Part shown: positions 6,319 through 50,100 of the stretch, in pieces
Position numbering within the stretch: position 1 is the first letter of the stretch
Layout of the letters: each line of letters begins with the position of its first letter
Source: Lepidodermella squamata
Taxonomy: Eukaryota; Animalia; Gastrotricha
Direction: 5' to 3'
DNA: 64,000 bases
Assembly: GCA_047495785.1 (NCBI GenBank)
Contig: JBLDXI010000042.1
Span: 1,798,001 to 1,862,000, forward strand
Made by a program: the position numbers and the translations under genes
The notes under the pieces: model-generated
What the model saw: only the letters and a program-made list of their open reading frames with translations
Told to the model about the DNA's origin: nothing
Database searches by the model: none

Positions 6319-9300
6319 ATGAAAAGACTAATACTAATTCTAATCGTAGTCAACTTTCAGAGCGCCTTGCTTAGTAGCAAAATAGGCGATTCGTCAACAA
6401 GCGGCAACAAGCTGGCCGAGTTCGACTCATGGATAAGATACGACAAGGTGGACGTCTTGCGAAGCAAATTTCCTGATCCGACAAAATTGGCAACGGTGAA
6501 GAATGAAACTGGCGATACATTGCTGCATTTAGCAGCTCATTACGGCAAAATCAAAGTCGCGCAATTTCTCGTCGATAAAGCTGGAGCTGAACTTACGGCT
6601 CGCAACAAAAATGGCGAACTTCCGATTCACCTGGCTTGTCTAGCTGGAAAATTGAGCTTCCTAAAATGGCTTGTCGATAAAAGTCAAGAACTGGAGCTGC
6701 CGAGGCGTTTGACGGTCGATGCTGATACAACACAGGGCCAAACCCCGCTTTTCTACGCTGTTAGGTCGAAATCCATCGATGCAGTTGCTGTTGTGAAATT
6801 CTTGCTGGAAAGAAATGCGACTAGGCTTCATCAGGACAAAACTGGACAGTTGGCTTTCGGGCTGGCGACTGAGCTGAACAAAACAGCAATCGGCGAGTTA
6901 CTCAGCGACAATTCATCTTACAGTAGAACTATCAAAAATGGAACACGAACAACTTGGCACATCATGGCAGCCCAAAATAAAGTCGACTACTTGGATCGCA
7001 ATTTTGTTCGCTCTAAATTTGACGTATCAGCGCCAGACGAATTCGGCGATACTCCTTTGTGCTATGCGACTCGGAATGGCCATTACGATTTTGTGGCGAA
7101 ATCGATGGAAAAATTTCCAAGTTTGACCAATGGTTCGCTTGCGTCGATCAAGTGCCGCTTAATTATCGAGAATGGGAACACAGGCGTGAAGTCGAAAGGA
7201 TCCGGCTCTCTTTTGTTCCTCGCGGCATTCATGCGTAAGGATAACCTGGTCAAGCTGTATCTAGAAGCGAAACTTGATCTTAAGGCGACTAACGAGGTAA
7301 GCAATTAATTATCAAAGCTCAGTGTTAATTTATCGAAAAGTTTTCCAAACCCAAATCTCACAATTTTCGAGAATGTTAATTTACTGTCCTTCCAATCAAC
7401 AAACCTCCTTAGAAGGTTCTTTTCTATCTCGAAAAAAGGTGAAGTGGGGGTAAACATATTTCCTATTTTTTCAAAATCAGAATGTCATCCATGCTATGGC
7501 TAAGCTTTCGGACGAAGAAGCTCAGTTGATCGAAGCAAAAAATTCAATCAGCTCACATCTCGTCTCAACCTTCACCGCAATCTCCCCCAACCTTCTCGAA
7601 GATCGCGATGAAACAGGCAGAACTCCGTATCTCGTCGCTGTTGCTAACGACGCTGAGCGATTCGCCGATGTTCTTAGCAACCAATTCAAAGCGAATACTC
7701 TAGCTACGGATAATCAAGGCTACACAGCTCTTCATCTCACAAGCAACAAAGCCGGTTTCAAGAAGCATTCGCCCGATTTCCTAGATCCTTTCAATCTGAA
7801 AGCTGACCCTAGCCAAATGACAACGCTTTTGGTAGCAGTTGATGAGCGAAAATCGATCGAGTTCATTGAGTTTTTGATCCAAGGAGGGGCGGACCTACAG
7901 GCAAGGAATAACTACAGCCAATCAGTCGCTCATTTAGCTGTGAAATCGAATTTTACCGAATTCCTAGAGCTTTATACCTCGAAGTTTGATCTATCGGCAT
8001 GCGACTCATTTTCATACACTCCGATGTTACTGGCAATCGGGGCTGGCAATCACAACCTTGCGACATTCATGTTGAATACCAGCGAAACGCTTTGGAATAA
8101 GCCAGTCGATTGCCAAACTAACGATAAAGTGGCCCATTCAGCTATGCGCTTCAAACAAATCGAAGTGGTGAAGTACGTGATGCCGAAACTCGAAAAACTC
8201 GAGCAATTGAACGCTGCGAATAAACTCGGCGAAACTCCACTTTCAATCGCTATTGAGGCAGACTTCCCAGCTGGTGCGAAGGCGATTGTTGACCGTAATC
8301 AAACTGCTGGGCTTGGGGTTGATTCGAATGGCTGGCCACTCTTGCATCGAGCCGTTCGCTGCAGCTCGGCTAGTATCGAAATTATCGATTTGCTACTCTC
8401 GCCGTTACCAAAGGACGAATTAACCCTGGTTCTCAAGCAGAAGAACATCCTCGGCCGGACTTTGTTATGGCTGGCAGTTGAGCAGGAATGCGCCAGACTT
8501 GTCGAGTTATTGATGGGCAAATTTAAGGCTGGTTGTGAGGTGAATAGCAACGGTAAGATGCCGCAAGACTGGGCGGAAGCTGCTGGGTTTCAAAACGTTG
8601 TCTCTGTTCTGAATGGCTACGACAGCTGTAAGAGGCAATCGCCGCAATCTTGCGCTTTGAGTTCAGGCATTTCGCCTGAATCGGCCAGGCTAAAAGGTTT
8701 GAGATTCTTGTTTCCAATTTGAACCTATATAACGTTAATTTTTCAGCTCTATCGGCTCGACCGAACGCGATTAAGAACGGTGTTATAACTTATCAAGAAA
8801 ACGATGCTTGTGGCGATGCTTCCGGGTCTATCGAGTGCACCGAAGGCTACTCGCTCATTGGTTCAGCTTCAGTTACTTACTCAGTTGGGGAAAACGCATG
8901 GAAAACTGCTGGCTACTGCGCGAAAAGTTTGCCATTTCCTCCAATTTTAATTAGAATCCGAAATGTTTTTCAGCTTGCGATGAAGGCATTTCTTCTATCA
9001 GCCAGGCCGAGATTAGCGAGGTGGAAACCCCAGCTGTCGTTGGTAGTTCCGTTACGTTCAAATGCATGGATACTTTCACGCTCAAAGGCTCGAACGTGAT
9101 TAGGTGCTTGGAAAATGGCACTTGGTCTGTTATGGGTAGCTGCGTTGATTCTGGTTAGTTTATCAAACTTCTGTCAATTCCATTCTCACTTGAAATTTCT
9201 TCATATTTTCAGAGACCAGCTTATACTGCGACGGCTCTCCTACAATTTCGAATGGAGTTTTACTGAATTTCAATCCATCGGAAACGTATTCTATCGGATC

Positions 9301-10563
9301 TGTGATTGCTGTTTCATGCTTGGATGGCTTCGCATTGCAAGGACTCGAATTTGTCTATTGCCTAGCTAACAACTCCTGGTCGCAACCCGGCAACTGTATT
9401 GCGCATGGTATGTTATTCTAGAGGAAAATTCACAACTTCAAAGAGGTTTCAATTATTATTCTCAATTTCCAGAAAACGCAATCCTAAAATTTAAATTTAA
9501 ATTTAAAAAAATTGAAACAATTCAAATTATTAATTATGTTTCCAGAAAAATCAGTAATTTCTTGAAATGGGAAACTTGATTTCGATTTCTCTAGTGTGGG
9601 AATCAGGATTCTAGAAGGTACTTCCATGTAATTTCGGACCAAGGGACCCCTCTGTGATTCTTTCGGGTTTTCTTGCCGGGACCTTCGGTTCCCCCTTACC
9701 TCCTTGTACTTTGAATTTTGCTTTACATTTCCCGTATTTCGCTCACACGGGCAAATTACCTATGCAATTGTTGTACTTGGATAAGGTTCCTGCGTGGTCC
9801 CTTCAATCGAAAACGGCTCTGTCATTGATGAACTGGCGTCGAAACCTTACGAACCACTCGCACTACTCGCACCCGGCTCCATCATCGTTATTCACTGCAA
9901 TAAGACCTTCGAAGTCGTTAATGGTTCCATGGTTTCAACTTGCTCATTCGAGTCAAAATGGAAACCTGAGCCTGGTTCGTGTCGCTTCAAGGTAAAAAAA
10001 TGGTTCACAAATAAAAATGGACTAGTCTATCTTCATTTTTCCAGGATGCAACCGCCGACCAATTCTTGCTTATCGAAGCTGTAAAATCTGGTAACTTGAG
10101 CGCTGCTAAGAAATTGGTGGAGCAAGGAGCTGTGAATGTTAACTGGCGTGATGAGAGGTCCCAGGGTGATTGGCCTGTCAAAAATGGAACTGCACTTCAC
10201 ATCGCCCTAGCTTTCAAAGCCCCTCTGGACCTCATTCGTTTGCTCGTCGAAGAAGGCCGTGCTGATGTGAATCTTAAGGAGGACACGTACGGTTCACGGC
10301 CGCTTGAAATCGCAGTTTCGGAATGTAGCGGCGAAGTTGTGGAGCTTTTGCTGAGAAATGGCGCTGCTATCGATGCGAGAAATGGCCGTGAGGGCTACAC
10401 GGCTCTCATGGCTGCGGCTATCAAGGGCAGGCTTGATAACGTTCAGATTCTGGTTCAATACGGCGCTAGTGCGAAACTTAAGTCGAAGAAGGGAACAACT
10501 GCTCTTGACGAGGCCATCTCAGCCAACCGTGACCAAGTCGTTCGATTCTTACGTGCTTTGTGA
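6319..10563 (+). CDS. Secreted ankyrin-repeat / sushi (CCP x4) / ankyrin mosaic protein (short paralog)
   Basis: Signal peptide MKRLILILIVVNFQSALLS. Ankyrin repeats ([42 protein letters not shown]) in exons 6319-7296 and 7481-~8696. Four CCP-like exons ~8747-9991 (C..GYSLIG..W..GYC; CMDTFTLKG..CLENGTWS; CLDGFALQG..CLANNSWS; CVVPSIENG..WKPEPGSC). Terminal ankyrin exon 10045-10563. No TM segment seen. Confidence 0.88.
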
Positions 10564-10755
10564 ATTAAACAGTACTTGCATCATTCAACGCTTTATTCTA
10601 CTCGTAAGCGTTTCTGTTCAAGTTGATTTGAGAATAAAGAACAATTTGTCAATACTTAGTTGTTCTCTAGTTTTGGCTTGTTGGAGACCAGGCAGGTCCC
10701 CACATTTTTTGAGTCAGAGTAGCGTTGGAGATGTAAGGGACAAGGTCAACTAAAT

Positions 10756-17074: not shown

Positions 17075-17884
17075 AATAACAAGTAATGTTACCTTCATCA
17101 TGTTTCAAAAAATATTGCAAGTAAATTTAATGGTGGATTGAAAAAGTTCAGTCTAACAAAAATGCCACGCGATCACCGTGTCCGAATTCAATGGTCTGTT
17201 TACAGTTGGAAATCAAGTATTTCATTCGTTTAAAGAATTCAAACTAAACGCAAAATCAACAACATGTTTTGATAAAAAATCTTTTTGTGACTTCCCAGAG
17301 GCGTCGGAAATAACGAAGAAAACAACATCGTTTGGGTTGAAAACAAGACGAATCAAATTTAACGTTAACCAACCGCCTATGATCTGCCTGGCCATCACTC
17401 AAAAAGTCTTCGCCTGATCATAGACTACATTGTGCGAAGTACCGGGGGTAAGGGGATCCCATCGTGGCATGAAATTCGCAAAAAACACACTGGGGCCCTT
17501 TGGTCAGATAAATTCGGGGCTAAAAACACCCACCAGTCTGAAGTTTTAAGGCTGAGCATTATTTTAACACGTTGGAAAATCGAGCAGAGGAGACCACTTT
17601 GATGCTGCCTACCAGTTTGAGTTCTGGTCGGCCTGGTCCCATTCTGTTCGGTTGAAACTATTCAAACTCTGGCAAAGCGTAGTCCAGTAAAGAAAAGCGT
17701 AGTCCAGGCAATCCGGGAATTGAAGCATTCCGATATTTTCTCAAATACATACATCAAGCATGAAAGTTACTTACTGATCGGTAATTTATTGATGTTATTT
17801 ATAGTGTTACCATGTTCCAATCTATAACAATCATTGACTATGAAAATCATTTTTCTTAGAGTATTGCCTACACATTGTTTCAAC

Positions 17885-18445
17885 CTGCTCATTCGAGTCA
17901 AAATGGAAACCTGAGCCTGGTTCCTGTCGCTTCAAGGTAACTAGATGGTTTAAAAATCAGGACTAGCCTATCTTCCTTTTTCCAGGATGCAACCGCCGAC
18001 CAATTCTTGCTTATCGAAGCTGTAAAATCTGGTAACTTGAGCGCTGCTAAGAAATTGGTGGAGCAAGGAGCTGTGAATGTTAACTGGCGTGACGAGAGGT
18101 CGCAAGGAAATTGGCCGGTCAAAAATGGAACAGCGCTTCACATTGCCTTAGCTTTCAAAGCCCCTCTGGACCTGATACGTTTGCTAGTCGAAGAAGGTCG
18201 TGCTGATGTGAATCTCAAGGAGGATACATACGGTTCACGGCCGCTTGAAATTGCAGTGTCAGAGTGTAGCGGCGAAGTTGTGGAGCTTTCATCAAATCTG
18301 CAATCAAGGGCAGGCTTGATAATGTTCAGATTCTGATTCAATACGGCGCTAGTGCGAAACTGAAGTCGAAGAAGGGAACAACTGCCCTTGATGAAGCTAT
18401 ATCGGCCAATCGTGACCAGGTCGTTCGATTTTTACGGGCTTCGAG
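17885..18445 (+). pseudogene. Truncated duplicate of the 3' end of the ankyrin-CCP gene (9940-10563)
   Basis: Very similar to the last CCP fragment, intron and terminal ankyrin exon. An internal deletion near 18290 shifts the frame, and there are no upstream exons. Confidence 0.9.
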
Positions 18446-25645: not shown

Positions 25646-26743
25646 ATGAACTTGATAATATCCATAAGCCTCGCCGCCTTTGGTATTTTTTCAACTTGGT
25701 TCCATAAAATTTAACAGTTTTCTTTTCGTGTAGTGATTGCCTTTTCTGAAGCGGGGCTTCCTACTGCGAGGCGGCAGCCTAAGCACAGAACTTGGCGGCG
25801 TATCGCCCTCGGCGAAGATGCTAACACCAACTCGAATGTGAATCGGCTCGAGGGTTCGCCGTATTTTTACTACGCGATCGACGACGGCAGCGACGAGGTG
25901 GCTCCGCTGCTACCCTGGTGGATCTACTACCACCCGAAACCGACGACTACAACAATATCAACATCGACAACTACAGTTGCTCAGGTAATAATTTATTATA
26001 AACTAGTAATCAAAACTCACAAAGAAATCAGATGGAGGAAATCAATTTGTATGGCTATTTATCGTAATTTCTCGAATTAAAAAAAGTAGGATCAGCTCTT
26101 TATGAACAAATTTGCAGAGTTATAAACCAAAATTAAGGAAAAATAATCAAAAAATCACCGTTAATAATGAGCATAAATTATTTGCTCTTTATTGATTTAT
26201 GTTGCATGCGTATGCTCAAGTTCAAGACATTTTATTTTCCGAATTTTGCAGGATGTTAATTTCTTATAATTTTAGGTGATTTTCCGGTGCTTTGCGCCAA
26301 ATGGCGCAGTTTCATGCCGACGGACAGCTTGCCAGGCCACTGAGAAGCCATACCCATCGACGCCCTTCACTCGCATGCGAGCATGCCAGAACGCCGTTAA
26401 AACGTTCAAATTCTACTCAACCCGTACTAGACCCGAATTGGCGAAGACAACTTGCGCAAGCATTGGTGGGCTGTTAGCGACGATCAAAACACAGGCGGAA
26501 GCGCTTGATGCTCTGGCGATCTCCGCAGGAATGACAGCCACGATTGGCCTGTCAAATGAGTCTGGACAATGGTTGTGGTCCGACGGCACGCCGTATGCCA
26601 ACTACCCGGCTTGGGACTCCGGTAAACCAAATGCCGGTGCAAATGCCTTTGCTGCTCTGCTCAATTCTGGTACCGGCCCTGTTATTACCGACTTTTCCAG
26701 CAGCAATACCAGCCCTGCATTTTTCTGTGAAACCTATGCTTAA
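25646..26743 (+). CDS. C-type lectin family A gene (A5)
   Basis: Exons 25646-25682 (MNLIISISLAAF), 25733-25984 and 26276-26743. The CTLD has KPN, and both inner-disulfide cysteines are replaced. Confidence 0.9.
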
Positions 26744-27285
26744 TTAAAACAGAACTGACATGATATCAGCAAGCCTCAATCTATGAAATTTTTTGAATAT
26801 TTTCTGAAATCACTTTACTTGTGAGTCTTGTGAGTACTATTAACACAGAATAACCTCAATAAATTACCGATCAGCAAGTAACTTTAATGCTTGATTTATG
26901 TATTTGACAAAATATCGAAATGCTCATCGATTGCCTGGGCTTTGTTCCTAATATTGCCAGAGTTCGAATAATTTCAATTGAATAGAACCGGATCAGGCCG
27001 ACCAGAACTCAAACTGAGAGGCAGCAGCAGCAATGGGGAATCAGTCTTGAAACTTCAGATTGGTGGGTATTTTTAGCCCCGAATTTATCTGACCACAGGG
27101 CCTCCTGTGTTTTTGGGGATTTCATGGCAGGATGGTACCCTCGTACCCCCGGTACTTCGCACACTGTAGCCTATGACGGCGTTTCCAAACCGTGTCCTAT
27201 GCCAGCTTTCAAGTGTCTTGTAGGACACTTGGGTGTTTATTTTATCAAGATCTCTGATCAAGAGACGATAAGGGATAGAATTTAT

Positions 27286-27527
27286 GGGTCCCCTACAAAG
27301 TAGGGAAAATTTAGTAACAGGCTTCAAAGTTAAAGCTTCAAAGCACCATGACCTCAAAGCAAAATTAAAAAATGGCTTCAAAGTAAAATAATAGCATTAA
27401 TTCCAAAACATGGTGATCATTGCTTAATACTTTATTTTACTTTTTTTATGGGAGTGCTTTTGGTCTGAAGTGTGCACAATTTGTTGCTCTCTGCTTTATT
27501 TGAAGCCTGCTACTCTGTGGGGGACCC
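27286..27527. mobile_element. Merlin-like MITE nested in the hAT element
   Basis: TIRs GGGTCCCCTACA / TGTGGGGGACCC. Perfect TSD gaatttat. Copy of 15330-15574. Confidence 0.88.
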
Positions 27528-27858
27528 GAATTTATCTTTGAAACTTACCTATGTCACTTTTTATTTAAGCTCGTTACAGATTTTACCTGTTGATATGATT
27601 ATTTGAATTTTAATTATTGAGAACGAAAACCCTGAGGCATTGTCTCATTGTTAAGAAGTTATGCGTCGTTTTTCAGTGTCAAATTCGCAAAAATTTCTCG
27701 ATGCGATTATTGTAATTTCACCTGTAATTTTTCGGTCGCCATCAAAAATCAATGTTAATGTTGTTAACAAGCAATCCATTTTAGCTTAAATAAATGTACC
27801 CATTCCAAACCTAATTTCATTCATTTTAGCAAGGTGTCCTGCGATCCATTCTCAAAGT

Positions 27859-28560
27859 CAGTGGTTCTCAAACCCTGGCACGCGTGCCAATCGTGGCACT
27901 CCGAGAAAATTGATCGGCATGCGTGCCAAAACTGGCACGCAGAGGGTTTTGACTGCGTTTGTTCCAAGAAGTAAGAAGATCCGTTCTATTCTCATTTTAA
28001 GAGGTGTTTGGACGTATTTTTGGGGAAAATGCCTAAAAATTTCCTCGCTTCGCTCGTTTAATTTGTTCGAATTTGAATTACCTAAACTTCACAAATGCAT
28101 TGTGCAGTGTGCAACTTCAAGTGGGGACATCATCCCCTCCATCTCGGCTAGACAGGACAAGAAAATTAGAAATTGGCCTGCTGTTTCGTCAGTTTTGAGG
28201 GGTTTTGGAGCACGTATCAACAGTAAATTTTCAAAATTTTCTCGCTTCGCTCCTTTTTCTTTGAAATCCCTAGTCATTTGGGTATAAAACTTTTCCATCC
28301 CTGACAGCTCCAGGATCCAAGATCGCACGGCATTATGAAATTTCTTCCATTATTTTAGCTTGATAACCAATAGAAAATCAATTTAAACAACTAAACTGTC
28401 TGAACGTCTTTACAAAATCACCAAAAATTCACAATTTTGCAACACAGAGAGTAGGGGGAACTATGTATTATGCTATTTTTTGAAACATCTTGGAATGGCA
28501 CGCGAGACCCTAGGCGTGCCACTTTTCTTGCACAGCCTCGAAAAAGTTTGAGAACCACTG
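27859..28560. mobile_element. hAT MITE nested in the hAT element
   Basis: Perfect 15-bp TIRs CAGTGGTTCTCAAAC / GTTTGAGAACCACTG. Perfect TSD ctcaaagt. Confidence 0.92.
28105..28329. mobile_element. Third-level nested hAT-type MITE
   Basis: Starts CAGTGTGCAACTT with an eroded right end. TSD gcattgtg / gcattatg (7/8). Related sequence at ~18683-18920. Confidence 0.6.
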
Positions 28561-28917
28561 CTCAAAGTACTCTACTGTATACTACAAGAGAACAATTTTG
28601 GGAACCGCTGGCCTATGATCAGGCGAAGACTTATTAATTGATGACAAGGTAGTTCATAGGCGGTAGGTTAACGTTAAATTAGTTTCAACCCAAACAATGT
28701 TCTTTTTTTCGTTATTTCCGACGCCTTTGGCAGTCACAAAAAGATTTATATCAAAACATGTTGTTGATTTTGCGTTTAATCTAAATTCTTAAAACGAATG
28801 AAATACGTTATTTCCAACTGTAAACAGGCCATTGAATTCGGACATCGCGTGGAATTTTTATTCAGACTGAATTTTTTTCAATCCGCCATTAAATTTATTT
28901 GCAATATTCTATGAAAC

Positions 28918-31323
28918 ATGATAAAGGTCGCAGCTTATTTGTTATTATTTTGCCTATTTGATGGTGTTTCGTGCCAATGGAAACGCTGTATGTCACTACT
29001 CGACAACTCATTCGTTGAATGCTCGGTGGCATGTGACCTATTGAAACAATACCAGGTTTTCATTTTCATACAATTTTTCGACTATTCAGCAGATCTACCT
29101 TGTTAAAATCCTATAGTCTGGCTCTAGTTTTACTACGTTCGATTTGTGTCGAAGTGGGGTGAGTAATTCTAAGAAAATCTTATCACACAGTGATGATTTA
29201 TTTCGAACAGAATGGTCGCATGTGTTACAAATTTGCAGCTTTAACTCCAAGCTGCCGGCCCGGCAATGTTCCATGCAAAGCTCCTGATGAAATTTCGGTG
29301 CGTCACTTTACTATATTTTACTATTATCAAGTTATTCTAGTCATCTTTTTCTTGTTATTGTATCCGATCAGTTTCAGCCATTTTACAGTCGAGCAATACT
29401 TCGCGCAAGTTTGGAATACTGCGAAACCGATCGGATGAATTTTGCGGTAGCTCATGATTTGCGAACATGACATCTTTGAAAATAAGTTTGCTAATTTGGT
29501 TTAGAATCAAAACTTCAAGCAATGCTCGTCGAATAGTGCACTGGTCACGTGCGTCCCGGTTAACCAAGCCTGTCCGAATAGTACAGTATGCGATTCTCAA
29601 ATTATCTGAATTTTAATGTAATTGTCAATGTAAAATTGTGAATTTTTCCATTTACTATACCATTAATTAAATCTGGAAAGCAAACTATTAGAGTCGGCTG
29701 ATTGCGGTCCTTCATTTTCCAGGCTACCGGTGGTCGAACACTTGCCAACCTTGATACTTGCGTCGATGGGAAAGGTGAGGAAAATCTATTGTTGACATGT
29801 TCCAATAATATTGAAATTCCTGTTTAGTTCAAATACCAGACAGTGAGAAGCTACATGTTCGCTGTTTCAGCAACCCTGGGCGAATCTTCAATGGCTGTCG
29901 TCTCAGCTCAATCGGTTGCTCGCCTGGCAACGAGAGCGAAGAAGCAACTCCGAAGCCATACATCAACCGGGATAACTGCCTTCGAGGCGTAAGTTCATTT
30001 ATAAACAAGTCAAATCTAACGATGATTTGTCGGTTCCAGGCTGCTGCTCAGTGTGATTTAGCTGGAACAAAGCTGTGCGTCGGAAGAGAATGTCCTGCTG
30101 GATCGACTCAGGTAGATAATATATGAAATATGAAACATAATAATTCTAGCTCTAGTTCAAAAGCATTTCAAACTTCTCAACATGTAGCGATACTTTTGTT
30201 TTCTAATCAGATCATGCTCTATTCGAATTCGACGTCATTTGAAACGAACTATCAGACCTGCTTGGCAGATATAACGCAGGTGAGTTTTGAGCCTCTCAAT
30301 GCCTGCAAATTTCTTATTTCCTCATAATTCGGAACTCAGTGATCGGTGAGTTTCCTGATTAGGATGCTGTGAGTGATGAAATAGCGTGTAAGTTCTCGAT
30401 CTCCAAACAGAGAAACTATCAAAAAATTCGTACTTGAACGGCTTATATGTCTTAAATTTTAAAATATTTTGAAAATATTCTGCTTTAAGAATCATGAAAG
30501 GCTGAGACTTAAGACTTTGACTTGTCAAGTTTGCTGGCAAAATCAGTAATATTTTCCTAATTGGCTAATTGGACGAGTCCAAGTTATCTCAGCCTTCCGG
30601 ATGAGACGCGATTCTTATTCATTTTCAAAAGAAGAGTATCATAGTAGAATATTTCGAATATTATATAACAGGAAAGGCATTTAGATAAATATTATACCGT
30701 AGTTACCGAAATAGAAGCCTAGGCGGCAACACTTTGTCCGCACTTTGTTGTTCTTTGAAGTGCCGCCCAGGCTTGTATTTCGGTAACAACGGTATATCAC
30801 GTTTCAATCATCAATTTTCCGGATTTTGCACGTGAGTAATTCATTGATTTTTTAGGTGATTTACCGGTGTCTTGGACAAAGTGGCGTTGTGACATGCCGA
30901 CAGACAGCTTGCCAGGCCACTGAGGAGCCACATCCATCGACGCCATTTGTCAGCATTCCGGCCTGCCAGAATTCGGTTAAAACGTTCAAATTCAACTCAA
31001 CCCGTACTAGACCCAAATTCGCGATCGCAAGTTGCGCGAGCAATGGCTGGCTGTTGGCAACAATCAAGACACATGCGGAGGCTCTTGATGCTTTGGCGAT
31101 CTCTGCAAACAGGACCAGCACCATCGGCCTGTCAAATGAGTCTGGGCAATGGCTGTGGTCCGACGGCACGCCGTATGCTAACTACCCGCCTTGGGACTCC
31201 GGTAAACCAAATGCCGGTGCAAATGCCTTTGCTGCTCTGCTCAATTCTGGTACCGGCCCTGTTATTACCGACTTTTCCAGCAGCAATACCAGCCCTGCAT
31301 TTTTCTGTGAAACCTATGCTTAA
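28918..31323 (+). CDS. Chimeric lectin gene (B2/A6): family B exons spliced to a family A terminal exon
   Basis: MIKVAAYLLLFCLFDGVSC, then small exons homologous to B1 (NGRMCYKFAALTPSCRPGNVPC; VRCFSNPGRIFNGCRLSSIGC..YINRDNC; IMLYSNSTSFETNYQTC) ending phase 0 at 30279. The next recognisable phase-0 exon is 30856-31323 (4-Cys module + family A CTLD). Confidence 0.75.
30697..30792. mobile_element. Short hairpin MITE with TA TSD (pogo/Tc1-like CCGT ends)
   Basis: TA-CCGTAGTTACCGAAATA..GCC..GGCGGCA / TGCCGCC..GGC..TATTTCGGTAACAACGG-TA. Second copy at 57194-57296. Confidence 0.75.
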
Positions 31324-32475
31324 TTAAAACAGAACTGACATGCTATCAGCAAGCCTCAATCTATGACAATCGCGAAATATTACCTGATATCACTTGAGAG
31401 TATTGTCAGCACAGATGATTAACTGAAATAATTTACTGATCAGTAAGTAGTTCCCTCATATGCTCATACCTATATATGACTCTAACAATTGTATTCAATG
31501 ACGACAGAGAGAGCTGGTCATTCCAAAGAGAAAGCGGTACCCATCTAATTTTGCCAGCGGCACCAGCCTGCCAGAACACCGTCAAAGTTTGCTACCACTG
31601 TAGCAGGCGATAGCCACTTTAGACTTCAAATAACGTGTGACTTTTTTATTAAAAATTATATTTTCCGAAAAGAAAAGTGCAGATTTTTATGATATCCCTT
31701 CATGTTTAAAAATGCTACCGCTGGATGCAATTTGAGCTTTGAATTTGGAAACAAATCTGTGCTACCTCTTCAACATTGTTACCATGCGATGTCAAACCGA
31801 CAAGAGAAAAGGTCCTAGGTTCCCAGTGAACTGTGTACGAGGCAACAGGCTACGCCCCGTGGGAAGTACTTCAAGGGTTTAATGTTCCTGGCTCAGCGTT
31901 TGTCGCATCGTGCCGCCGAAAGCGAAGATCGGTCCGTGCATTTACGTGAAAACGTTGTTCCTTAATTTCAGTCTTACGAATAGCCTAAAGATTCTTCGAT
32001 TAGGAGTTTCTTGCCTCAGATGATCCGATAAGTCCAGACTTATGTTCCAATAGAAAATGTTGGCCTTAATGTTGTCTTTCATTTTAGTGCCATTTGTTCT
32101 GGAGTAGTCTCGCACTAATAAATAACGATCACACAATATTTTGAAACAAATGACCACGTCGGATAGTGAATTTTATGGAGAATTCTATTCCGAATTTTTT
32201 ATTTCGATTTATTAGTTACGACCATGAAACTCGAGAACAACATGCGCTTTTGCGAATTCTATTTGCGAATTTGACAGTGGTAACTTTCCATTAAAGTTTA
32301 AAGGCAATCTAGCCCCGGCATTGAGTTGATTTTATTGCCAGATTTACTGCACTCGATACTCGATGCGCTGCTATTAATCCAAACAACGCCTACGTCGAAT
32401 AAATCATTCAACTGCTAATGATCCCAAGGCACGCGAGATCAGTGAGAGAAAATTTAATTTTCAATTTCAAAAGCA

Positions 32476-34029
32476 ATGCAATTGATAATTTCAATCAGCC
32501 TCGCCTTGATAGGTTGTTCTTTTCTCCGTTTATGTTTAATCAAAAAGCAATTTTATTCTTCTCGTTTAGGCATTGCCTTCTATGAAGCGGGGATTCCTAC
32601 TGCCAGGCGACAGCCAAAGCACAGAGCATGGCGGCGTATCGCCCTCGGCGAAGATGCTAACACCAACTCGAATGTGAATAGGCTCGAGGGTTCGCCGTAT
32701 TTTTACTACGCGATCGATGAAGGTAGCGACCAGATGGCTCCGCTGCTACCCTGGTGGATCTACTTCCACCCGAAACCAACGACTACAACGACATCAGCAT
32801 CGACAACGACGCCGACAACAACAACAGTGACTCAGGTATGTGATGAATGATTCGTAAGAAAATTTCGAGCTGATAAATGTCAGTATCTTTGAATCGTTCA
32901 GAAATTTCCCGAATTCTAAATAATAACTACACACAGAGATTTATCCAGCCATCCCCTACCCACCCCCTGGCCATCCCCTCAAATCGAGCGGTCATCCCCT
33001 AAATATTAATGCCCGTGACAGTATTGTATGATTCATGACTGATCCCGTAGGGGCGGCAGCCTTGATAGAACATACCGCAGTTTGTGAATTATGGTATTTT
33101 CTTTAATCGACCTTCTCAAAACAGTTAAAACAGTACTGTTATACTAATTTGCATATTCAGTTTTAGCGTGTGACTATGATAATGAGCGCGCGCACTAATG
33201 CTGGTTGCGTAACAGGTATTGCGTGCCGCATTTTGAGAGCCAAATTTAAGCGCGCGCACCGAACAAAGCCACAAAACTCGATAAAACGAACATATCGCGC
33301 TAATTTCTTCATAAAAATGGTATAATAGGGTCGAAAAAGTAGCTATTCGCGAGCGAGCGTAGCGAGCGAGCGCTAAATTGCATTTCACCTCCAAAACCTC
33401 TCGATTTTTCAACCCATCCCCTCGGACAAAAAGCTGGATAAACCCCTGACTACACAATTTACAGAATATTTCCTTAGAACATTTAAAATTAATTTGAAAA
33501 AATTGAAAATTAATCAAGTTTTCAAATTGTTATATTCCGGATTTTGCCAGTAAGTAATTCATTGATTTTTTAGGTGGTTTCACGGTGCCTCGGACCAAGT
33601 GGCGCAGTGACATGCCGACAAACAGCTTGCCAGGCCACTGAGAAGCCATACCCATCGACGTCCTTCGCCAGCATGTCGGCCTGCCAGAACGCCGTTAAAA
33701 CGTTGAAATACTTCACAACCCCTTCAAGTCGCGACCAGGCGATTGCAACTTGCGCTGGCATTGGCGGGCTGTTAGCGACCATTAAGACGCAGGCGGAAGT
33801 TTCCAAAGCTCAGGAAATCTCTTCAGACCAGGCCGGCTACATTGGCTTGTCCAATGAGTCCGGACAATGGGTGTGGTACGATGGCGCGCCATATGCTAAC
33901 TACCCGCCTTGGCGCTCCGGTTACCCAAGTGGCAGTGTGAATGCCTGCGGTGTTCTGGGCAGCCTTACTATTACGGACTTTCCATGTAGCAATAATTTGC
34001 CTGCATTTTTCTGTGAAACCTATGCCTAA
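32476..34029 (+). CDS. C-type lectin family A gene (A7)
   Basis: Exons 32476-32512, 32570-32834 and 33574-34029. CTLD with YIGLSN, WVWYDG, YPS, FFCETYA. Confidence 0.9.
32934..33448. mobile_element. hAT MITE in intron 2 of A7
   Basis: TIRs CAGAGATTTATCCAGC / GCTGGATAAACCCCTG. Perfect TSD actacaca. Subterminal catcccct repeats. Confidence 0.88.
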
Positions 34030-34600
34030 TTAATCAGGACTGACATGGTATCTGCAGGCTTCAGTCTATACAAACTATTGAAATTTGTCTGCTTAGCACA
34101 GCTATAAGATATAAGATACAACTAACTTATGAAGCAATATTATCGGCAAGGAAAAACTTCAATAAATTGAGCGATGACTTGGCAAATTTAGGATTTATTT
34201 GCTTATGGACAGTATGCGAAGTACCGGGGCTGCGGGGGTGCCATGCCCCCATACCTCGAGACGTCGAGGCAAGAAAACCCAAGAAACCACAGGCGGTCAG
34301 ATATATTCTGGGCTGAAAATACGCAAGCCTACCCCAGGACCCTACTTCATCCACTGATTCCGGTTCTGTATCAGTATATGAAGCACATGTACGTATATAA
34401 ACTTGATCCTTTTCAGATTTGTGAAACTATGAACTCTGGCGTTTCACAGGTGTCAGGGAAGATTGGATGTTATCGATGGCTATCTATGAATGTTTTGAAA
34501 TTTATGACTAGGTCGGATCCTGAATATTAAGAATAATTTCATGCGGTTTCATTTTATTGAGTTAAATTAACTGAAATTAACATTTTTGTGGCCATCCTAT

Positions 34601-34710
34601 GCGGAGCCAGCTCGTCGCTGCCATCATCGATCGCGCAGTAAAAATACGACGAACCCTCGAGTCGATTCACATTCGATTTGGTGTTGGCATTGTCGCCATG
34701 CTCTGTGCTC
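34601..34710 (-). pseudogene. Inverted fragment of family A exon 2
   Basis: The reverse complement reads HRAWR..ANTKSNVNRLEGSSYFYCAIDDGSDELAP, with an internal deletion. Confidence 0.8.
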
Positions 34711-35464
34711 GTGGTCTCGTTGCAATCGTTATCGTTATCGCTTATAAAATCTCTGCTGACGCATCTGCCATTTTAAAATAGAGAACGCGTGCACAGCCAA
34801 AAAATTAACGAAGATATCTCGCAAATATTAAGAGCTGGAATTAAGCTGGAAAAGCTTGATTTTGATTAAATTGAAATAGTAGTTGTAACTATGATGACTG
34901 GAACTGGTTTATTTGCTCCGTATTTGCTTAACTGTAGTACAGGTGTTCTTGACATTACCACGTACTTATTTTTCGTCGATTACACCAGTTTAGATCATCA
35001 ACGTGTTTGGATGGCAACCGACGGGCATGGTAGGGTTCATCGCTAACAGTTCACTCTGCAAGTCCAGTGTACACAGCCACAGTGTACCATAGAGGGGCTT
35101 GAGCGCTGAGTTCACTTACAGCTATGTGTGGATGTTGTTAGTCCAAACTATGAAATGTGTTACATCACCAGGCGGACTTTGAAATAAATCACCAGGCCAA
35201 ATCCTGCATATTACGGAGAATTGCTTGTTATTTATTTTCATTAATTTACAAATAAGGAATAAATTGAAATTAGTAATTTTCCCCGGCATTGAGTTGATAT
35301 TATATTGCTGGATTTACAGCTATGTGAGGCTGTCAGTACACACAGAAAAACCCCCCGCCGAATAAATCAATCGAATGTTAATTAGGTCATGGCACGCGAG
35401 ATGGATAAGAGAAACCAATTTCAAATAATGCATTATTTAACATAATTTTTAATTTTTCAAAGCA

Positions 35465-36656
35465 ATGAAATTGTTCAATCCAATAAGCCTCGTCTTGATA
35501 GGTTTTTCCATCTTCATTGATGTTTCATCGGAAAATAATTGTTGTCATCTCGCTTAGGCATTGCCGTCTCTGAAGCAGGGTTTCCTACTGCCAGGCTACA
35601 GCCCAAGCACAGAGCATGGCGACGCATCGCCCTCGGCGACAATAATGCTAACACTAATTCGAATGTGAATCGACTCGAGGGTTCGCCGTACTTTTACTAC
35701 GCGATCGATGACGGCAGCGACCAGATGGCTCCGCTGCTACCCTGGTGGATCTACTACCACCCGAAACCAACGACTACAACGACATCAGCATCGACAACGA
35801 CGCCGACAACAACTACGCGGGCTCGAGCTCAGGCAAGAATAATTATTAAATGAACAGTAAGAAAAAAGGAGAAAATTCAAATTAGTCGCGTCTCACGAAA
35901 TCGTCTCACGAATTCAAAATCGGATAGTCATTAGAATGGGATTATAGAATCGGAATACAAACATTTTTGGCACGGATTTATGGCACTTATTTTGTGATTT
36001 GTAACAACAACCACTGGAGAATTTTCTGAAATTGATTTTAAAAATCTTACGACTCTTTTGTGTAATTTTCTCGGATTCATTCTGGCTACGCTTTTAGGAT
36101 CGAATATATTATCTTCGGCGAATACCGGAACGTTTGGTTCTGTCTGGCGATTTCTCTTGTTTGAGTTTTCAAATTTTTTTATTATCAGGTTGTTTTCCGG
36201 TGCCTTGCAACCAATGGCGCAGTGACATGCCGACAGACAGCTTGCCAGGCCACTGAGAAGACATACCCATCGACGCCCTTCACCAGCATGTCGGCCTGCC
36301 AGAACGCCGTTAAAACGCTGAAATTCTACGCAACCCCTTCAAGTCGCGACGCTGCGATCGCAACTTGTGCGAGCATTGGCGGGCTGTTAGCGACGATCAA
36401 GACACAAGCGGAAGCTACCGATGCTCTGGCGAAATCGTCACTCAGGGCCGGCTATATTGGCTTGTCGAATGACTCTGGGCAATGGCTGTGGTCCGATGGC
36501 GCCCCGTATGCTAACTACCCGCCTTGGTTCGCCGGTCAACCAGATGACGGTGCAAATGCCTGTGGTGCTCTGGTAAATTCAGGTGACGGCCCTGCAATTG
36601 TCGACTATCCGTGTAGCGACAATTTCCCGCAATTTTTCTGTGAAACTTATGCTTAA
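35465..36656 (+). CDS. C-type lectin family A gene (A8)
   Basis: Exons 35465-35501, 35559-35832 (GC donor) and 36189-36656. CTLD with YIGLSN, WLWSDG, QPD, FFCETYA. Confidence 0.88.
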
Positions 36657-44189: not shown

Positions 44190-47100
44190 CTAGTGAAATG
44201 AGGCGTTGGTGTCTCGCTTGCCGATGCGAATGAAGCTGCTATACTGCATAACGCTGTTGGTACCGAATGAAATTTGAGAATAGCCAGTTCCGAAATTTTT
44301 GAAAAACGATTGGCTTTGCCACTGTCTGCCGCAAAACATCTCGTCGGTGCCGTCACCTATAAGCAAAAGAATTCTCAACTTTACAAATTAGTTTTCGAAT
44401 ACATAGGTACAAATGAAATCGAAATTGATCGATTGGTTGAAATTATTTGAATCTTGATGGATTAACAACTCACGGCAGTCTCTGAAGCCGTTGCACCTCG
44501 CACTAGGACTGTAGCACTCCGTACGACTAATGCATGGCATAGCACCGAACTTGCAACTCGGGCAATGCTCATCACTGCGGTCGCCTTATATTAAAACAAA
44601 AATATTAGTAAAATGATGATCTAGTCTCATCTCGAGCCCGTATTACCGCAATCATCGTAACCGTTACACACTCGACTGTAAGGCACGCAGTACTGTTTGT
44701 TGCGGCACAGAAAAAATCCTGGATCGCACTGTCTCAATAGAAAGTACAGCTGTTAAACAAGATGATCTATGACATTTGAACTAACCTGTGGGCAGCCATT
44801 TTCGTCACTGTTATCAACTGGGGAAGCAAATACTTTAGCAGCTAGAAAATGCAGAAACTTGAGGAACTTACAGCAATCGTTAACGCCGTTGCACAGATGA
44901 CCAGATGTTATGCAGAAGGGAGCATTGATGCAGGGGAATGACCCAGGAGCGCAATTTTGTGGCGGAGGAGGTGGAGGCTGAGCCTAATTTGTGAAACATT
45001 GATCATGCTCATGATTAGGGAAAGCACCTACCGTGCGGTGAGTATTTGCGTCACGGTCATCGTTTGTCGTTTCTTTACAGTCATACTCATCGCTATTGTC
45101 GCCTGAAATTAAAAAAATTGGTTCAATGTAATGAATGAACAGTTTTGGGTGTTTGTGACATCAATGGCATTTTGATACCAAATAAAAGTCGTCATAACTT
45201 TCAGCAGAAGCTTAAACACTGAGAAAAACTCACCGCAGTCATCAGCGCCATCACATACCCAACCTTTTTTGATGCAATTACCGTTATCGCATATAAATCC
45301 CGAGCACTATACAAAAGTTGGAGTATCTTCCGACTATTCATTGCTATTTTACAAAGCACTCACCGCGGTCGTCGTGGGCCGGGTCGTAGGAGGTGGGGTA
45401 GTTGGAGGTGTTGGGCAACCCTGCTCATCGCTACCATCACCTTAAGAAAATGGAACTCGTCATTTCTAACAAAATTTTACGCTGTTTAGAATAGCTCTCC
45501 ACTATTGGCAGAGTTCGAGTAAATTCTGCCCGTCTTCGAACTTATGAAAACCTACGATTTGTCGAGATTTGAATTTGATTGGTCGAAATGTACCAAAAGC
45601 GGTGAATTCTTTATATTCAAGCCTTAAATTTTTAGTTATGTCAAACTCGAAGTCTGCGATCAATTTGAACTTTAAAAACGATTTCCAAGTTTCTGGTAGT
45701 TATTCAAGATTTTAAGCTAAAGCCACTCATTGATTAATGAGTATTAGAGCGAGAACAACTCACCGCAATCGTCAGTTCGATCGCATTTCCAACTATAGTT
45801 GATGCATTTACCGTTATTGCAACGGAATCCCGAGCACTGCGCGAATGTTGGAATCAGTCAGTCCTTTTCATTTTTGTATAGGACTTACCGGGGTTGTGGT
45901 AGGTGGGGTTGTTCGACGCGGTGGGCAGCCTTCCTCATCGCTCATATCACCTGAAAAGTATTTTGGTTGAGTAGGATGCACTGAATGGATCAGCACATAA
46001 TCCTCCTAACGACTCACCGCAATCGTTATCACCATCGCATTTATAACTTCTAGTAATGCATTTGCCGTTGTCACATCGGAAACCCGAGCACTGTGGCATT
46101 GAAACATCGGATATAACATTTCAAAAGAATAATTTCAAAGGAAATATATGTACCGGAGTCGTAGGTGGAACTGTCGCTGGGCAATCCTCCTCATCGCTTC
46201 CATCACCTAGAAATATTTGAAAATTAATGTAGCCGTGATTACGAATCGATCTCAATTTTGCATACCGCAGTTTCTGATGCCGTTGCACCTCTGCCACGAG
46301 TCGTAGCAGCCACCGTCACGGCAAGTATTCGCGTAACACTAGAGGAGTTTTGAATATTCTCCCAGATTTATATTATACTTTTTTCGTAAAATACCGGTCG
46401 TTTGGTGGTTGGACAGTTCAATTCATCGCTGTAATCTCCTGCATTCAAAATTGAAGTAAATTATGAACATCATTTTTTCAAAAGACAATTTATTGGTGCA
46501 CATCCTATATTTGAGGTCCAGCGGTTATATTGGTTTGAAATTTTGACGTCGGGTTCTTTCACAAATGTTTGCATGAGTAAATGTACACCTTTCATTTCTG
46601 TGAGCCTCATAAACCCTTGAAAAATTCGGCTTTGACAAACTGTTTCGGGCAAGGGTCCCTTAGATTTTTCCAATGGTTTCTATGGGTTCGGTATTTTTTA
46701 ATAAATTTCTTGTCCAAACCCTGAAACATGATTTTTTAAGCAAAAACTAACCGCAGTCGTTGTTGCCGTTACAGCGAAGTGATGCAGGGATGCACAGTTT
46801 GCTTGAGACGCATCGAAAATCGTAAGACGGGCACTATAAGCCAGAATTGACGAAGCGATATGAAAAATACAGGTTTTTGACAAAAACAAGAATGAGAAAT
46901 ATCAGAATAAATCAAACTCACGTAAGAAGTGGTGGTTGTTGTTGGCTCTGGGGTAGTAACTGGGCAGTTCCATTCATCACTTCGATCATCTGCGTGTAAA
47001 ATATCATAACATAAAATCAGGACAAATTCTCGAGGAAATTCATACCACAGTCGTAAACTCCATCGCACTTTACAGACCAAGAAACGCATTGGCGGTTACG

Positions 47101-50100
47101 GCAGATAAATACGGCCTGAAAATCGAACAAAATATAAGAATTATCCAGATTCAATGATCGAACTGCTCACGCAAGGCGTCGTTGTTGTGGTCGTGGTCGT
47201 GGTCGTAGTCGTGGTTGTTGTTGTAGTCGTTGTAGTCGTTGTCGGCCTCAATTCATACAACTTCTCAGAAACCCTCGCCAAGGCATTGCTCTGCGCGAGA
47301 GCCATCGCTGTAACACCATCTACATTCGCATGATCGATATCAGCCTTCCGATCGATTAGTAACAAAGCTATGTCCTCCTGTTTCGCTTTCAACGCCTCAA
47401 ACAAAGCATTGCTACCCTTGAAGGACGTCGCGTTCACATCGGCGTAGTTATCGAGCAGTAACTGGACCAATTCGAGACGGCCCTTGCTTGAGGCTGTCAT
47501 CAAAGCCGGCCAACCCTCGCGATCTTCCCTCGAATCAACAGCTGCGCCTCGGTCGAGCAAAAGCTTCAGAACTTGGGGGTCAGGATGGCCGACAGCAATC
47601 TCAAGAGGCGACGAGCCGTACTCTCCCTCCTTTGCGTTGACATTAGCTCGGTTCGGGTTAACCAGCAGTTCGATGAGGGCATACGGTGCATAGTGAACCA
47701 GAGCGATATGAAGAGCTGTGCCATTTTTGACAGGCCAGGGGCCTAGGGTCCGTTCGTCTCGCCAGTTCGCGTCCAGGTAACCGAGACCGAGAAGTTCTCG
47801 CGCCTTATCAACATTGCCGTTTATGCATGCCTCGATCAACATCCGCTGTTCGGCGATCCAATCCTTGAGGAAATAAGAAAGTTAAGATTGAACATCGGAT
47901 TGGCCTTCAAATGAATGCAATTTACCTTTCTCGCGCATTCTCCGATTTTTGGTTTCCAACTCGAATCGGCTTGGCAAATCGATGCCATGGCTCCATCTTT
48001 AACCTCGAATCCTGGTTTACATTTCGTTATTACCGCTTGTCCCGGGGCCATCTCAACTCCAACCGATAGTACAGTTTTCTCGGTTGCATCCAAGACGAAG
48101 CCATTCTCTAACGATGGAACACTGCAAAGACCTGAAATCGCAAAGAAATTGAGTTTAAAATGTCTTTAACGCCCCGCTGGCGACCTTTTTGCTTGCAAAC
48201 GCCAGGAATGGACCAGGAACTGTTCTTCAAGCAAACCATCAAGCCAGAACCAACTAATTCGTAGCCTTCCAAGCAAGTCAATACAGCAACTGCTCCGGGG
48301 TTGAAGATGTTATCTTCGGTATGGACTGAGATATTTCCGTTGGCGACTTGGGGAGGGTCGTCACATTGCGGAACATCTGTTTGAAAAGTTGGAAATTAAT
48401 CAATACAGAATTTCCGGAAATTCCTACCAATTCCTTGGCAGTACCCAGGCTCGCTCCAAGTTCCATCGTCGTAGCAAGTGAAACTATTTGCCCCAACCAA
48501 TGAGTACCCATCCATGCACTCGAAAGTAAAAACAGTCCCGGGAGCAACAATTGCCGGGTCGCCAAACTCTGTCCTGACGGATGAGATTGATGGGAAAGGT
48601 GGGGAACAGCCTAAAAAAGTCATGTAAAAACGAAATAAATGCAGCATGAATATTGCTTCCAACCTTTAGCGCAATAAGCATCCATGGCCCAAACGCCACC
48701 GTTAAAATCGACAGTTTCCGATCCGATCAAAAAGTAGCCTTTATCACAGATGATTCGCCCAGTCGCACTTTTGCAAGCACTAGCTGCTTCCTGGAATTCT
48801 ATTTTCCCGTTGGCCATCCCCTTGGGCCTATCGACGAGGGCTAAAATATGAGCATTAGCGTGGAATAATCAGAAGAATTTGAAAAATTACCTTGGATTGA
48901 TAAAGTGGGTGAAGCCCGCAATTCTGCGGCGCAAGATTGCATCGTTTCAACTTTGCATCGATCGAATTTCTCCAAAACTGCTACAACACGATTATAGCCG
49001 GCAGCTTCAGCCCAAATCATCGGTAAATTCCCATTCGAATTCCGATCGCAAGGAGCTTCGTACTTCTCGAGTAAAATTTCGACCAACTCCGGACATTTCC
49101 GTTCAATCGCTAGCCATAGCAGGGTATCGCCCTTCACATCTTTTTCGCTGAGCTTCATCGAAATTTCACTCTTTGTTAGCATCGATAGTAGTGTATCGAC
49201 AATTTTAACGCTTGCCTCGCTGCATCGAGCTGCCCGGTGCAAAACAGACCGGCCGCTTGGGTCCACCCAAGTTCCAGCTGTCCGATTTATCTTGACAATT
49301 TCTTCGATTCCCTCGACGAATTCGACTTCGATGGCAATAGAAATCGGGGTCTCCTTATCTTTATTCGCTTGGAACAATTGCCCGATTGATTCTTTACCAG
49401 ACAGCGCCGTTTTAACCAAATCGAGTTGCTTGAAACGAAGAGACGCGTGGAGAAGCCTGTCGTCACTTTTGCAGTCGATTCGAGAATCGAAGAGAATTTT
49501 CTCAGTTTCGAGGAGAAATTTAGTGATGTCGTTACGGCCGAGTTCGATTGCCAACAAAAGCGGTGATTTTCCGAATTTATCGCAGCTCAGCAAGTCGATG
49601 CTGTTCTTCACTTTCTCCAGGACTTTCAGATAATTCGATTTTACGGCGAGATGAGCGATCGACTGTCGATAGCTGTTTACTTGAAATTTCTCTGCACCTC
49701 CTTTCATCAAATATTCGATGAACTCGATTGGTTTCCGCTGGTCGACAGCTACCAAGAGCGGGGTCATCTTCATCGGGAATTCATTGTCTTCAGTCAGCTG
49801 ATTTTCGTAATTGAATGCGCCTGGGTAGTCGCTTTTGTGTTTCTCAAAGGCTTTTATACTTACAGCGAGATGAATTCGTGAATAGCCGTAGAAATCAATC
49901 GCATCTTTCCTAGCTTGGTAACGGTTGCTAAGGATATCAGCGAATGACTCGGCGTCGTTAGCAACGGCGACCAGATAAGGAGTTCTGCCTGTAGAATCGC
50001 GTTCCTCCATTAACAGAGGGATTTTATCAGCAAAAGTTAATAGGATTTCATCCGTGGATGTTGCATCGAGAAGATGAGCATCGGCATCAGACAATTTCGC

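Follow-up and report, generated by a model that had tools for sequence, protein, structure and literature searches.

The stretch of DNA considered here, hereafter the window, comprises 64,000 nucleotides of the genome of the gastrotrich Lepidodermella squamata (assembly GCA_047495785.1, contig JBLDXI010000042.1, positions 1,798,001 to 1,862,000 of the forward strand) and carries two related genes that join ankyrin repeats to complement control protein (CCP, or sushi) modules. Few protein-binding modules are as common as ankyrin repeats, which are treated as intracellular in animals, the latrotoxins being the textbook exception. The gene that is the main focus of this text, gene 1, lies on the plus strand at window positions 6319–10563 (all coordinates below are those of the window unless a contig is named), and its product is built, in this order, of a putative signal peptide, a solenoid with some 20 ankyrin repeats, four CCP modules, of which the first is divergent and the others are canonical, and a C-terminal ankyrin block. 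The domains themselves are known; what is new is the architecture and the compartment.

When read in three frames and across its junctions, gene 1 consists of seven exons with a total open reading frame (ORF) of 3,474 nt, corresponding to 1,157 codons. The ATG at 6319 is the earliest in its open frame and the stop codon occupies positions 10561–10563, so that the interval marked in an earlier note on this DNA matches the coding sequence exactly from start to stop; the presence of an AATAAA poly(A) signal 70 nt past the stop (10633–10638, +) indicates that the gene ends there. All six introns follow the GT-AG rule and their phases are mutually consistent. Exon 1 (6319–7296, +) encodes the signal peptide and the start of the N-terminal ankyrin solenoid, and ends in phase 0 at a GTAAGC donor. 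Exon 2 (7481–8696, +) adds some ten to eleven more repeats and a cap, as judged from Pfam, structure prediction and Foldseek, and ends in phase 1. The CCP region is then distributed over four exons, namely exon 3 for the divergent CCP1-like module (8747–8926, +), exon 4 for CCP2 (8974–9153, +) and exon 5 for CCP3 (9213–9407, +), all three in phase 1-1, and exon 6 for CCP4 (9786–9991, +) in phase 1-0. Exon 7 (10045–10563, +) encodes the C-terminal ankyrin block of 172 residues, about five repeats by length, together with the stop codon.

Gene 1 does not stand alone in its genome. A search of the assembly (121.2 Mb, 151 contigs, approximately 43% GC) with exons 1, 2 and 7 as queries reveals about 20 loci that share the same layout, with a long ankyrin array, four to six CCP modules and a C-terminal ankyrin block, at 27–93% identity. 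These loci are spread over ten contigs (C42, which holds the window, C85, C8, C54, C29, C3, C32, C21, C6 and C45), and both module order and intron phases are preserved in paralogs that are 33–50% identical and lie on many of these contigs. Two members display parts of the layout in a particularly compact form: in L015, the signal peptide, the entire ankyrin array and the CCP1-like module are encoded in a single uninterrupted ORF of 836 residues, and in L021 the modules CCP2–4 lie within one ORF. The members clustered on contig C29 lack some 220 residues in the central part of the array, and the number of repeats thus varies within the family. The C-terminal ankyrin block of gene 1, for its part, has more than 130 look-alikes genome-wide.

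The assignment of the domains relies on the Pfam gathering cut-offs, which are 20.7 bits for Sushi (PF00084), 27.3 bits for Ank_2 and 24.1 bits for Ldl_recept_a (PF00057). Ank_2 is recognized in exons 1, 2 and 7 of gene 1 with 87.9, 94.1 and 88.0 bits, respectively, and in the L015 ORF with 196 bits. CCP2, CCP3 and CCP4 all exceed the Sushi cut-off (38.6 bits, 36.8 bits over the full length of the domain, and 24.3 bits, respectively), and each has four cysteines and the conserved tryptophan. Exon 3 yields no Pfam match at E ≤ 0.1 and encodes three cysteines, the third canonical one being absent; a profile of the CCP1-like modules of nine paralogs matches the CCP2–4 profile of the family (hhalign 96.4%, E 1.3e-9). 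Given this match, and given that Cys717, the final and conserved cysteine of exon 2 (8651–8653, +), makes four together with the three of exon 3, exon 3 appears to encode a derived CCP whose first cysteine is probably Cys717. Thus, the four CCP modules counted in the earlier note are better described as three canonical modules preceded by a derived one that Pfam does not recognize and that the profile comparison supports.

As for the fold of the ankyrin region, the AlphaFold2 model of the exon 2 product (mean predicted local distance difference test, pLDDT, 90.4; predicted template-modelling score 0.81) contains ten to eleven helix-pair repeats, and its top matches in the PDB, as retrieved with Foldseek, come from ankyrin-1 and ankyrin-B, whose repeat stacks give template-modelling (TM) scores of 0.65–0.71. 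In the model of the L015 ORF, the solenoid extends over residues 34–733, approximately, and has about 19–20 repeats.

The array is preceded by a putative signal peptide of about 20 residues (6319–6378, +), identified by hydropathy and made of the residues MKR, a 10-residue hydrophobic core and small residues. In a hydropathy scan (KD19) of gene 1, the highest value, 1.93, is found at residue 4 and the runner-up, 1.54, in an ankyrin helix, so that only the N-terminal stretch of the 1,157 residues reaches transmembrane strength; by the same measure, no membrane span of that strength follows the N-terminus either in gene 1 or in the first seven exons of the second gene of the window, paralog 2. 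Hydrophobic N-termini of the signal-peptide type (KD9 ≥ 2.3) are present in 15 of the 15 members whose open frame includes an N-terminal methionine; among generic ankyrin proteins taken as controls, KD9 reaches 2.5 in only 7 of 147. A signal peptide directly ahead of an ankyrin array and a protein free of transmembrane segments were both proposed at the outset, and both agree with these measures. Moreover, the CCP modules of this family, as well as the low-density lipoprotein receptor class A (LDLa) modules and the poly-threonine tract described below for paralog 2, are extracellular module types.

The strongest new evidence comes from the cysteines of the solenoid. For their survey, 22 members were aligned to the hidden Markov model (HMM) of the family, and residues were read wherever a cysteine recurs. 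Four pairs stand out as putative disulfides in gene 1: Cys248 (in TPLC) with Cys279 (IKC), at 7060–7155 (+) and HMM positions 266/296, both cysteines being found in 21 of 21 covered members; Cys500 (SAC) with Cys537 (VDC), at 8000–8113 (+) and HMM positions 528/564, in consecutive finger loops; Cys620 (RCS) with Cys663 (QEC), at 8360–8491 (+) and HMM positions 647/690, in the helix1-helix2 turns of consecutive repeats; and Cys678 (GCE) with Cys709 (DSC), at 8534–8629 (+) and HMM positions 705/736, which is found in 19 of 19 covered members and lies in the loops that follow helix 2 in the final two repeats. The paired residues are 31–43 positions apart, which is about one repeat, and according to the predicted secondary structure they occupy equivalent loops of consecutive repeats. 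The second pair is complete in a single clade of six members and absent from the others, no member retaining a single cysteine of the two. The third is conserved in all covered members except C45_L050, in which both positions are serine, while the sister gene of this member retains both cysteines. By comparison, a lone cysteine in the helix bearing HLAC (HMM position 124) is replaced by alanine, isoleucine or serine in seven members. Since the pairs are either invariant or change jointly whereas the lone cysteine varies freely, this co-variation supports the presence of four inter-repeat disulfides in the solenoid. The pairs had been noticed by their motifs in the two genes of the window, and all four recur in both of them as well as in further members. 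Within exon 2, 4 of the 30 invariant columns are cysteines. Altogether, gene 1 has 26 cysteines, of which 24 fall into twelve plausible pairs (four in the solenoid, two in its tail and CCP1, and six in CCP2–4), the two others being lone cysteines in helices.

A measure of constraint is available from a copy of gene 1 on contig C85, which is 93% identical at the DNA level and shows no indels over the 3,474 coding bases. The exons are generally more conserved than the introns, and synonymous (dS) and nonsynonymous (dN) divergence amount to 0.15 and 0.032, giving a dN/dS ratio of 0.21. When broken down by region, this ratio is 0.28 for the N-terminal ankyrin array, 0.16 for the CCP modules, 0.05 for the C-terminal ankyrin block and 1.27 for the signal peptide, the sequence of which drifts although its hydrophobicity is maintained. 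In view of the low dN/dS, the absence of indels and the stronger conservation of exons over introns, all seven exons behave as constrained coding sequence. At an overall ratio of 0.21, no sign of positive or diversifying selection acting gene-wide is seen.

These data also bear on whether the gene is correctly assembled from its parts. Conceivably, the ankyrin and CCP exons could belong to different transcripts, or the N-terminus could be a non-functional signal and the ankyrin array cytosolic; retention of intron 2 would indeed introduce a stop eight codons past exon 2 and result in an ankyrin-only product, the public run at this locus contains DNA only, and the signal peptide is judged by hydropathy alone. 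We nevertheless regard such an artefact as very improbable. Each CCP exon begins in phase 1 and lacks an ATG or a leader of its own, introns of only 47–59 bp lie between CCP exons, and the order and phases described above are kept in paralogs as distant as 33–50% identity on many contigs. In addition, L015 has the ankyrin array and the CCP1-like module in one ORF, cysteine parity spans the boundary between exons 2 and 3, and purifying selection acts on all exons together.

The second gene of the window, paralog 2, is encoded on the minus strand (47144–51459) and shares 46% protein identity with gene 1 over about 1,150 residues. Its first seven exons reproduce the module order and intron phases of gene 1, with exon lengths that differ by 3–15 nt and GT-AG introns throughout. 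Exon 1 (50485–51459, −) encodes a signal peptide and ankyrin repeats, exon 2 (48891–50121, −) further ankyrin repeats, and the CCP exons, with the phases of gene 1, follow at 48664–48840, 48428–48610, 48185–48376 and 47926–48131 (−; total span 47926–48840). The C-terminal ankyrin block (47144–47863, −) is followed by 22 threonines, with a putative donor near 47175, and then by a provisionally delimited tail (44190–47166, −) of about seven to nine putative LDLa modules, each split over two exons and separated by Thr/Pro-rich linkers. Among the four pieces submitted to Pfam, Ldl_recept_a exceeds the cut-off in two, both exons for first halves (34 and 35 bits), and stays below it in the two others (18.4 and 14.2 bits), and the exons for the second halves carry DxSDE motifs, that is, an acidic SDE cluster. 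Thus, the parallel in module order drawn by the earlier note holds, and its layout of paralog 2 has to be extended by the 22 threonines and the LDLa continuation, which it omitted. Within the tail, one second half of an LDLa module (46460–46990, −; DYSDELNCP) has no recognizable first half upstream in any frame; this orphan half-module may be the sign of a decayed exon or of a missed one.

Outside this genome, no relative with the same architecture was found in the searched protein, ESM Atlas and JGI sets. A HMMER search with exon 2 against 1.84 billion representatives returns only generic ankyrin arrays of at most 34% identity, and the best 150 matches include no CCP and none that aligns end-to-end with the family HMM. 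A profile search with four full N-terminal ORFs against 5.8 billion proteins finds 113 generic ankyrin proteins, none with PF00084, and a query made of CCP4 and the C-terminal ankyrin block finds, in the same number of proteins, 164 matches without Sushi among the 120 listed. Likewise, the ESM Atlas contains plain ankyrin clusters and the JGI metagenome contigs contain 19 weak generic ankyrin loci, neither with a relative combining ankyrin and sushi. With its roughly 20 loci here, the family therefore fits the lineage-specific origin first suggested for it, with the qualification that, because these searches have blind spots (length windows, word seeds and few gastrotrich data), “lineage-restricted” means not seen elsewhere so far. 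In the literature, no paper on extracellular ankyrin-sushi proteins of animals was found, and ankyrin is not mentioned in the L. squamata genome paper (PMC11660948).

The one published secretory protein found to combine ankyrin and sushi comes from apicomplexan parasites. The rhoptry-neck protein RON9 of Toxoplasma has a signal peptide and PEST repeats, together with five to six ankyrin repeats, a single sushi domain and a predicted transmembrane segment at its C-terminus; it is located in a secretory organelle and has orthologues in coccidians and Cryptosporidium (PMC3299665). Compared by layout only, RON9 and the gastrotrich family have in common that a signal peptide, ankyrin repeats and sushi co-occur. 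They differ in almost everything else: the apicomplexan protein has its N-terminal PEST repeats, its short array, its single sushi domain and its C-terminal transmembrane segment, whereas the gastrotrich proteins have about 20 ankyrin repeats plus an extra block, four to six CCP modules, no transmembrane segment and conserved cysteine pairs within the array. Accordingly, gene 1 exhibits neither a PEST-repeat N-terminus, nor an array of five to six repeats, nor a single sushi domain, nor a C-terminal transmembrane segment. The statement that no described family has this architecture thus stands for the full layout, and does not extend to the mere combination of signal peptide, ankyrin and sushi, which RON9 has (PMC3299665).

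A different comparison is offered by α-latrotoxin and δ-latroinsectotoxin. These belong to the known secreted ankyrin proteins of animals, and have arrays of about 20–22 repeats that act outside the cell and appear among the Foldseek matches with TM scores of about 0.6. They differ from the gene 1 family in their pore-forming N-terminal helical/connector region, which the family lacks, and in the absence of CCP modules; they are also not known to have a classical signal peptide. By analogy with the latrotoxins or RON9, the gastrotrich proteins could be secreted effectors or toxins acting on prey, microbes or other cells, RON9 illustrating that ankyrin and sushi can take the secretory route together in a eukaryote. 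We consider this quite improbable, since no N-terminal helical or pore-forming domain corresponding to the latrotoxin wing/connector is present in gene 1, where ankyrin helices begin about 35–60 residues past the signal peptide and no other Pfam domain intervenes; Pfam recognizes only Ank, Sushi and LDLa in these proteins, and neither a RON9-like PEST repeat region nor a C-terminal transmembrane segment is found. Furthermore, the latrotoxin matches are no better than those to any long ankyrin stack, and L. squamata grazes on bacteria and detritus.

From a structural point of view, the best matches are the cytoskeletal ankyrins (ANK1/ankyrin-R and ankyrin-B; PDB 7v0x, 4rlv and 5y4d), with the TM scores of 0.65–0.71 given above and a sequence identity of merely 18–20%. 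Their long superhelical stack forms an inner groove that binds extended peptide ligands. In contrast to the gastrotrich proteins, these ankyrins are cytosolic, contain ZU5-UPA-death domains and have no signal peptide, CCP or conserved disulfide-type cysteine pairs; in gene 1, a putative signal peptide is present, Pfam reveals Ank and Sushi alone, and the ZU5-UPA-death module of ANK1–3 is not found. The binding model that we favour rests on this likeness to the membrane-binding domain of ankyrin-R and ankyrin-B. In this model, the N-terminal signal peptide would direct the gene 1 product to the endoplasmic reticulum, where the solenoid of about 20 repeats would fold and be stapled by the disulfides Cys248-279, 500-537, 620-663 and 678-709, each of them joining equivalent loops of consecutive repeats, and a fifth link would probably connect Cys717 in the tail of the solenoid to the modified first CCP. 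The four CCP beads would serve as a semi-rigid spacer to the C-terminal ankyrin block, resulting in a soluble, rod-like secreted form in which the long groove and the smaller C-terminal block may each hold a protein ligand. Based on the deep divergence between paralogs and the purifying selection within each, every paralog may have its own conserved partner. Paralog 2 would add to this plan an O-glycosylated poly-threonine stalk and LDLa ligand modules predicted to bind calcium.

The same long solenoid could instead serve a mechanical purpose. A regular array of some 20 repeats resembles the ankyrin springs of NOMPC and of the ankyrins themselves, both of which are among the Foldseek matches, and the protein might accordingly bear loads or lend elasticity in the cuticle, the basal matrix, the egg envelope or an adhesive-gland secretion, with the CCP, mucin and LDLa parts acting as cross-linking modules rather than in specific binding. 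The mucin-like poly-threonine stalk of paralog 2, the variation in repeat number in the C29 cluster, the Cys-rich tails of some family members, and selection that is purifying and not diversifying would all suit such a structural material. We still regard it as unlikely, because motifs characteristic of matrix proteins, whether of low complexity or for cross-linking, are absent from gene 1, and because about 20 paralogs that have diverged to 27–50% identity while keeping the framework fit paralog-specific partners better than a bulk material.

Returning to the binding scaffold, the hydropathy of the N-terminus, the absence of a transmembrane segment in the sequence that follows, the co-variation of the cysteines and the purifying selection make it probable that gene 1 encodes a secretory-pathway protein in which a disulfide-stapled ankyrin array is fused to CCP modules, in line with the secreted, disulfide-stabilised scaffold that the earlier note had envisaged. 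For the whole statement, namely that the product is a soluble, secreted, two-headed binding scaffold or adaptor with a role in recognition, we put the probability at roughly 55%. Several points weigh against this reading. The only public run that holds the locus is DNA, with contigs that span the introns and show no spliced joints, so that the case for a single transcript comes from gene structure; the signal-peptide calls are simple hydropathy measures that do not place the cleavage site; and in the L015 model the CCP1-like tail has a pLDDT below 50, which makes it uninformative on the junction between the ankyrin array and CCP1. The co-variation of the cysteines amounts to two independent events plus invariance, and equivalent positions in neighbouring ankyrin repeats are about 10 Å apart, which means that a disulfide would require the small offsets seen here. 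The low dN/dS speaks against an immune repertoire that diversifies rapidly, and does not tell what the function is. Finally, the number of N-glycosylation sequons in the other family members is at expectation, with no family-wide enrichment.

Regarding these sequons, all ten that had been listed for gene 1 are present, compared with 5.7 ± 2.2 expected from composition, which is a marginal excess (p approximately 0.05). Since sequon density is not above chance, the glycosylation argument originally attached to them is weak, and enrichment as a family-wide signal of glycosylation was rejected. Some sequons nevertheless keep their position across paralogs while their middle residue changes, and the N-x-T at Asn1032 (10183–10185, +), which belongs to the C-terminal block and there to its first repeat, is retained in 9 of 11 paralogs. 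Such positional conservation is suggestive of glycosylation, no more.

If secretion and binding are confirmed, the family would represent a natural adaptation of the ankyrin fold to the extracellular space, as engineers have achieved with designed ankyrin repeat proteins (DARPins), which demonstrate that this fold can bind targets outside cells, and it could serve as a natural template for disulfide-stabilised ankyrin binders. Leucine-rich repeat (LRR) ectodomains, such as those of the lamprey variable lymphocyte receptors (VLRs) and the Toll-like receptors, are likewise extracellular repeat-solenoid binders that are capped and stabilised by disulfides. The gastrotrich proteins would share with LRR ectodomains and DARPins the use of a repeat solenoid as an extracellular binding surface, and differ from them in that the former have the LRR fold and the latter are of synthetic origin. 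In contrast to the systems of the lamprey VLR type, no sign of somatic diversification or of rapid diversifying selection is seen here (dN/dS 0.21). A more far-reaching and rather doubtful proposal is that the gastrotrich lineage has re-engineered the ankyrin fold, by means of inter-repeat disulfides, into its main extracellular recognition scaffold, with a germline-encoded repertoire. Were this true, the repertoire would fill the role that LRR ectodomains, lectins or immunoglobulin domains have elsewhere, for instance in immunity, self/non-self discrimination or mate and egg recognition. If confirmed, these genes could also offer a first molecular entry point to the extracellular recognition or matrix biology of Gastrotricha, for which functional genomics is almost lacking across the phylum.

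A number of further observations concern the family in the genome at large. Contig C85 (303 kb; L013 and L023) and contig C42 (the window and L022) each carry two family genes that agree in order and orientation and are 150 kb apart in the former and 248 kb in the latter. The published assembly of L. squamata has 122 Mb in 157 contigs, 43% GC and 3% heterozygosity (PMC11660948). As the dS of 0.15 between gene 1 and its C85 copy is about five times this genome-wide heterozygosity, C85 represents a very divergent haplotype or else a segmental duplication. On contig C8 (78 kb), locus L014 (6226–7545) holds a copy of paralog 2 whose exon 2 equivalent is interrupted by two in-frame stops and by a gap of some 30 residues; this is a broken allele or copy, or else an assembly error. 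The C29 loci L044–L047 (at about 245–307 kb of that contig) form a dense cluster in which shortened members lie among numerous C-terminal ankyrin blocks that stand alone, and the signal peptides of these members are not in the open frame of the first ankyrin exon. On contig C54, the neighbours L015 (820–1617) and L016 (1946–2815) carry, past the C-terminal block, some 60 further residues that are rich in cysteine; this tail is conserved between both and may be another extracellular-type module.

Within the window itself, a fragment of 421 bp on the plus strand (17873–18289) is 91% identical to positions 9928–10348 of gene 1, covering the end of the CCP4 exon, the intron and 300 bp at the start of the C-terminal ankyrin exon; further on, its frames are broken. 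This gene fragment is a partial duplicate or a pseudogene piece, and explains both a loose end at 9928 and the doubled read-layout depth found there. Directly downstream of gene 1, the plus strand contains ORFs with a zinc finger of the Spin-doc type (PF18658; 11071–13111). Between the two ankyrin-CCP genes, four ORFs of about 150 residues start at 26276, 30856, 33574 and 36222 (region 26276–36656, +), and the one that was scanned has a C-type lectin domain; the two genes thus appear to flank a lectin gene cluster. Finally, just past paralog 2, an ORF on the plus strand (52159–53638) encodes a protein kinase domain (Pfam Pkinase, E 1.7e-32).

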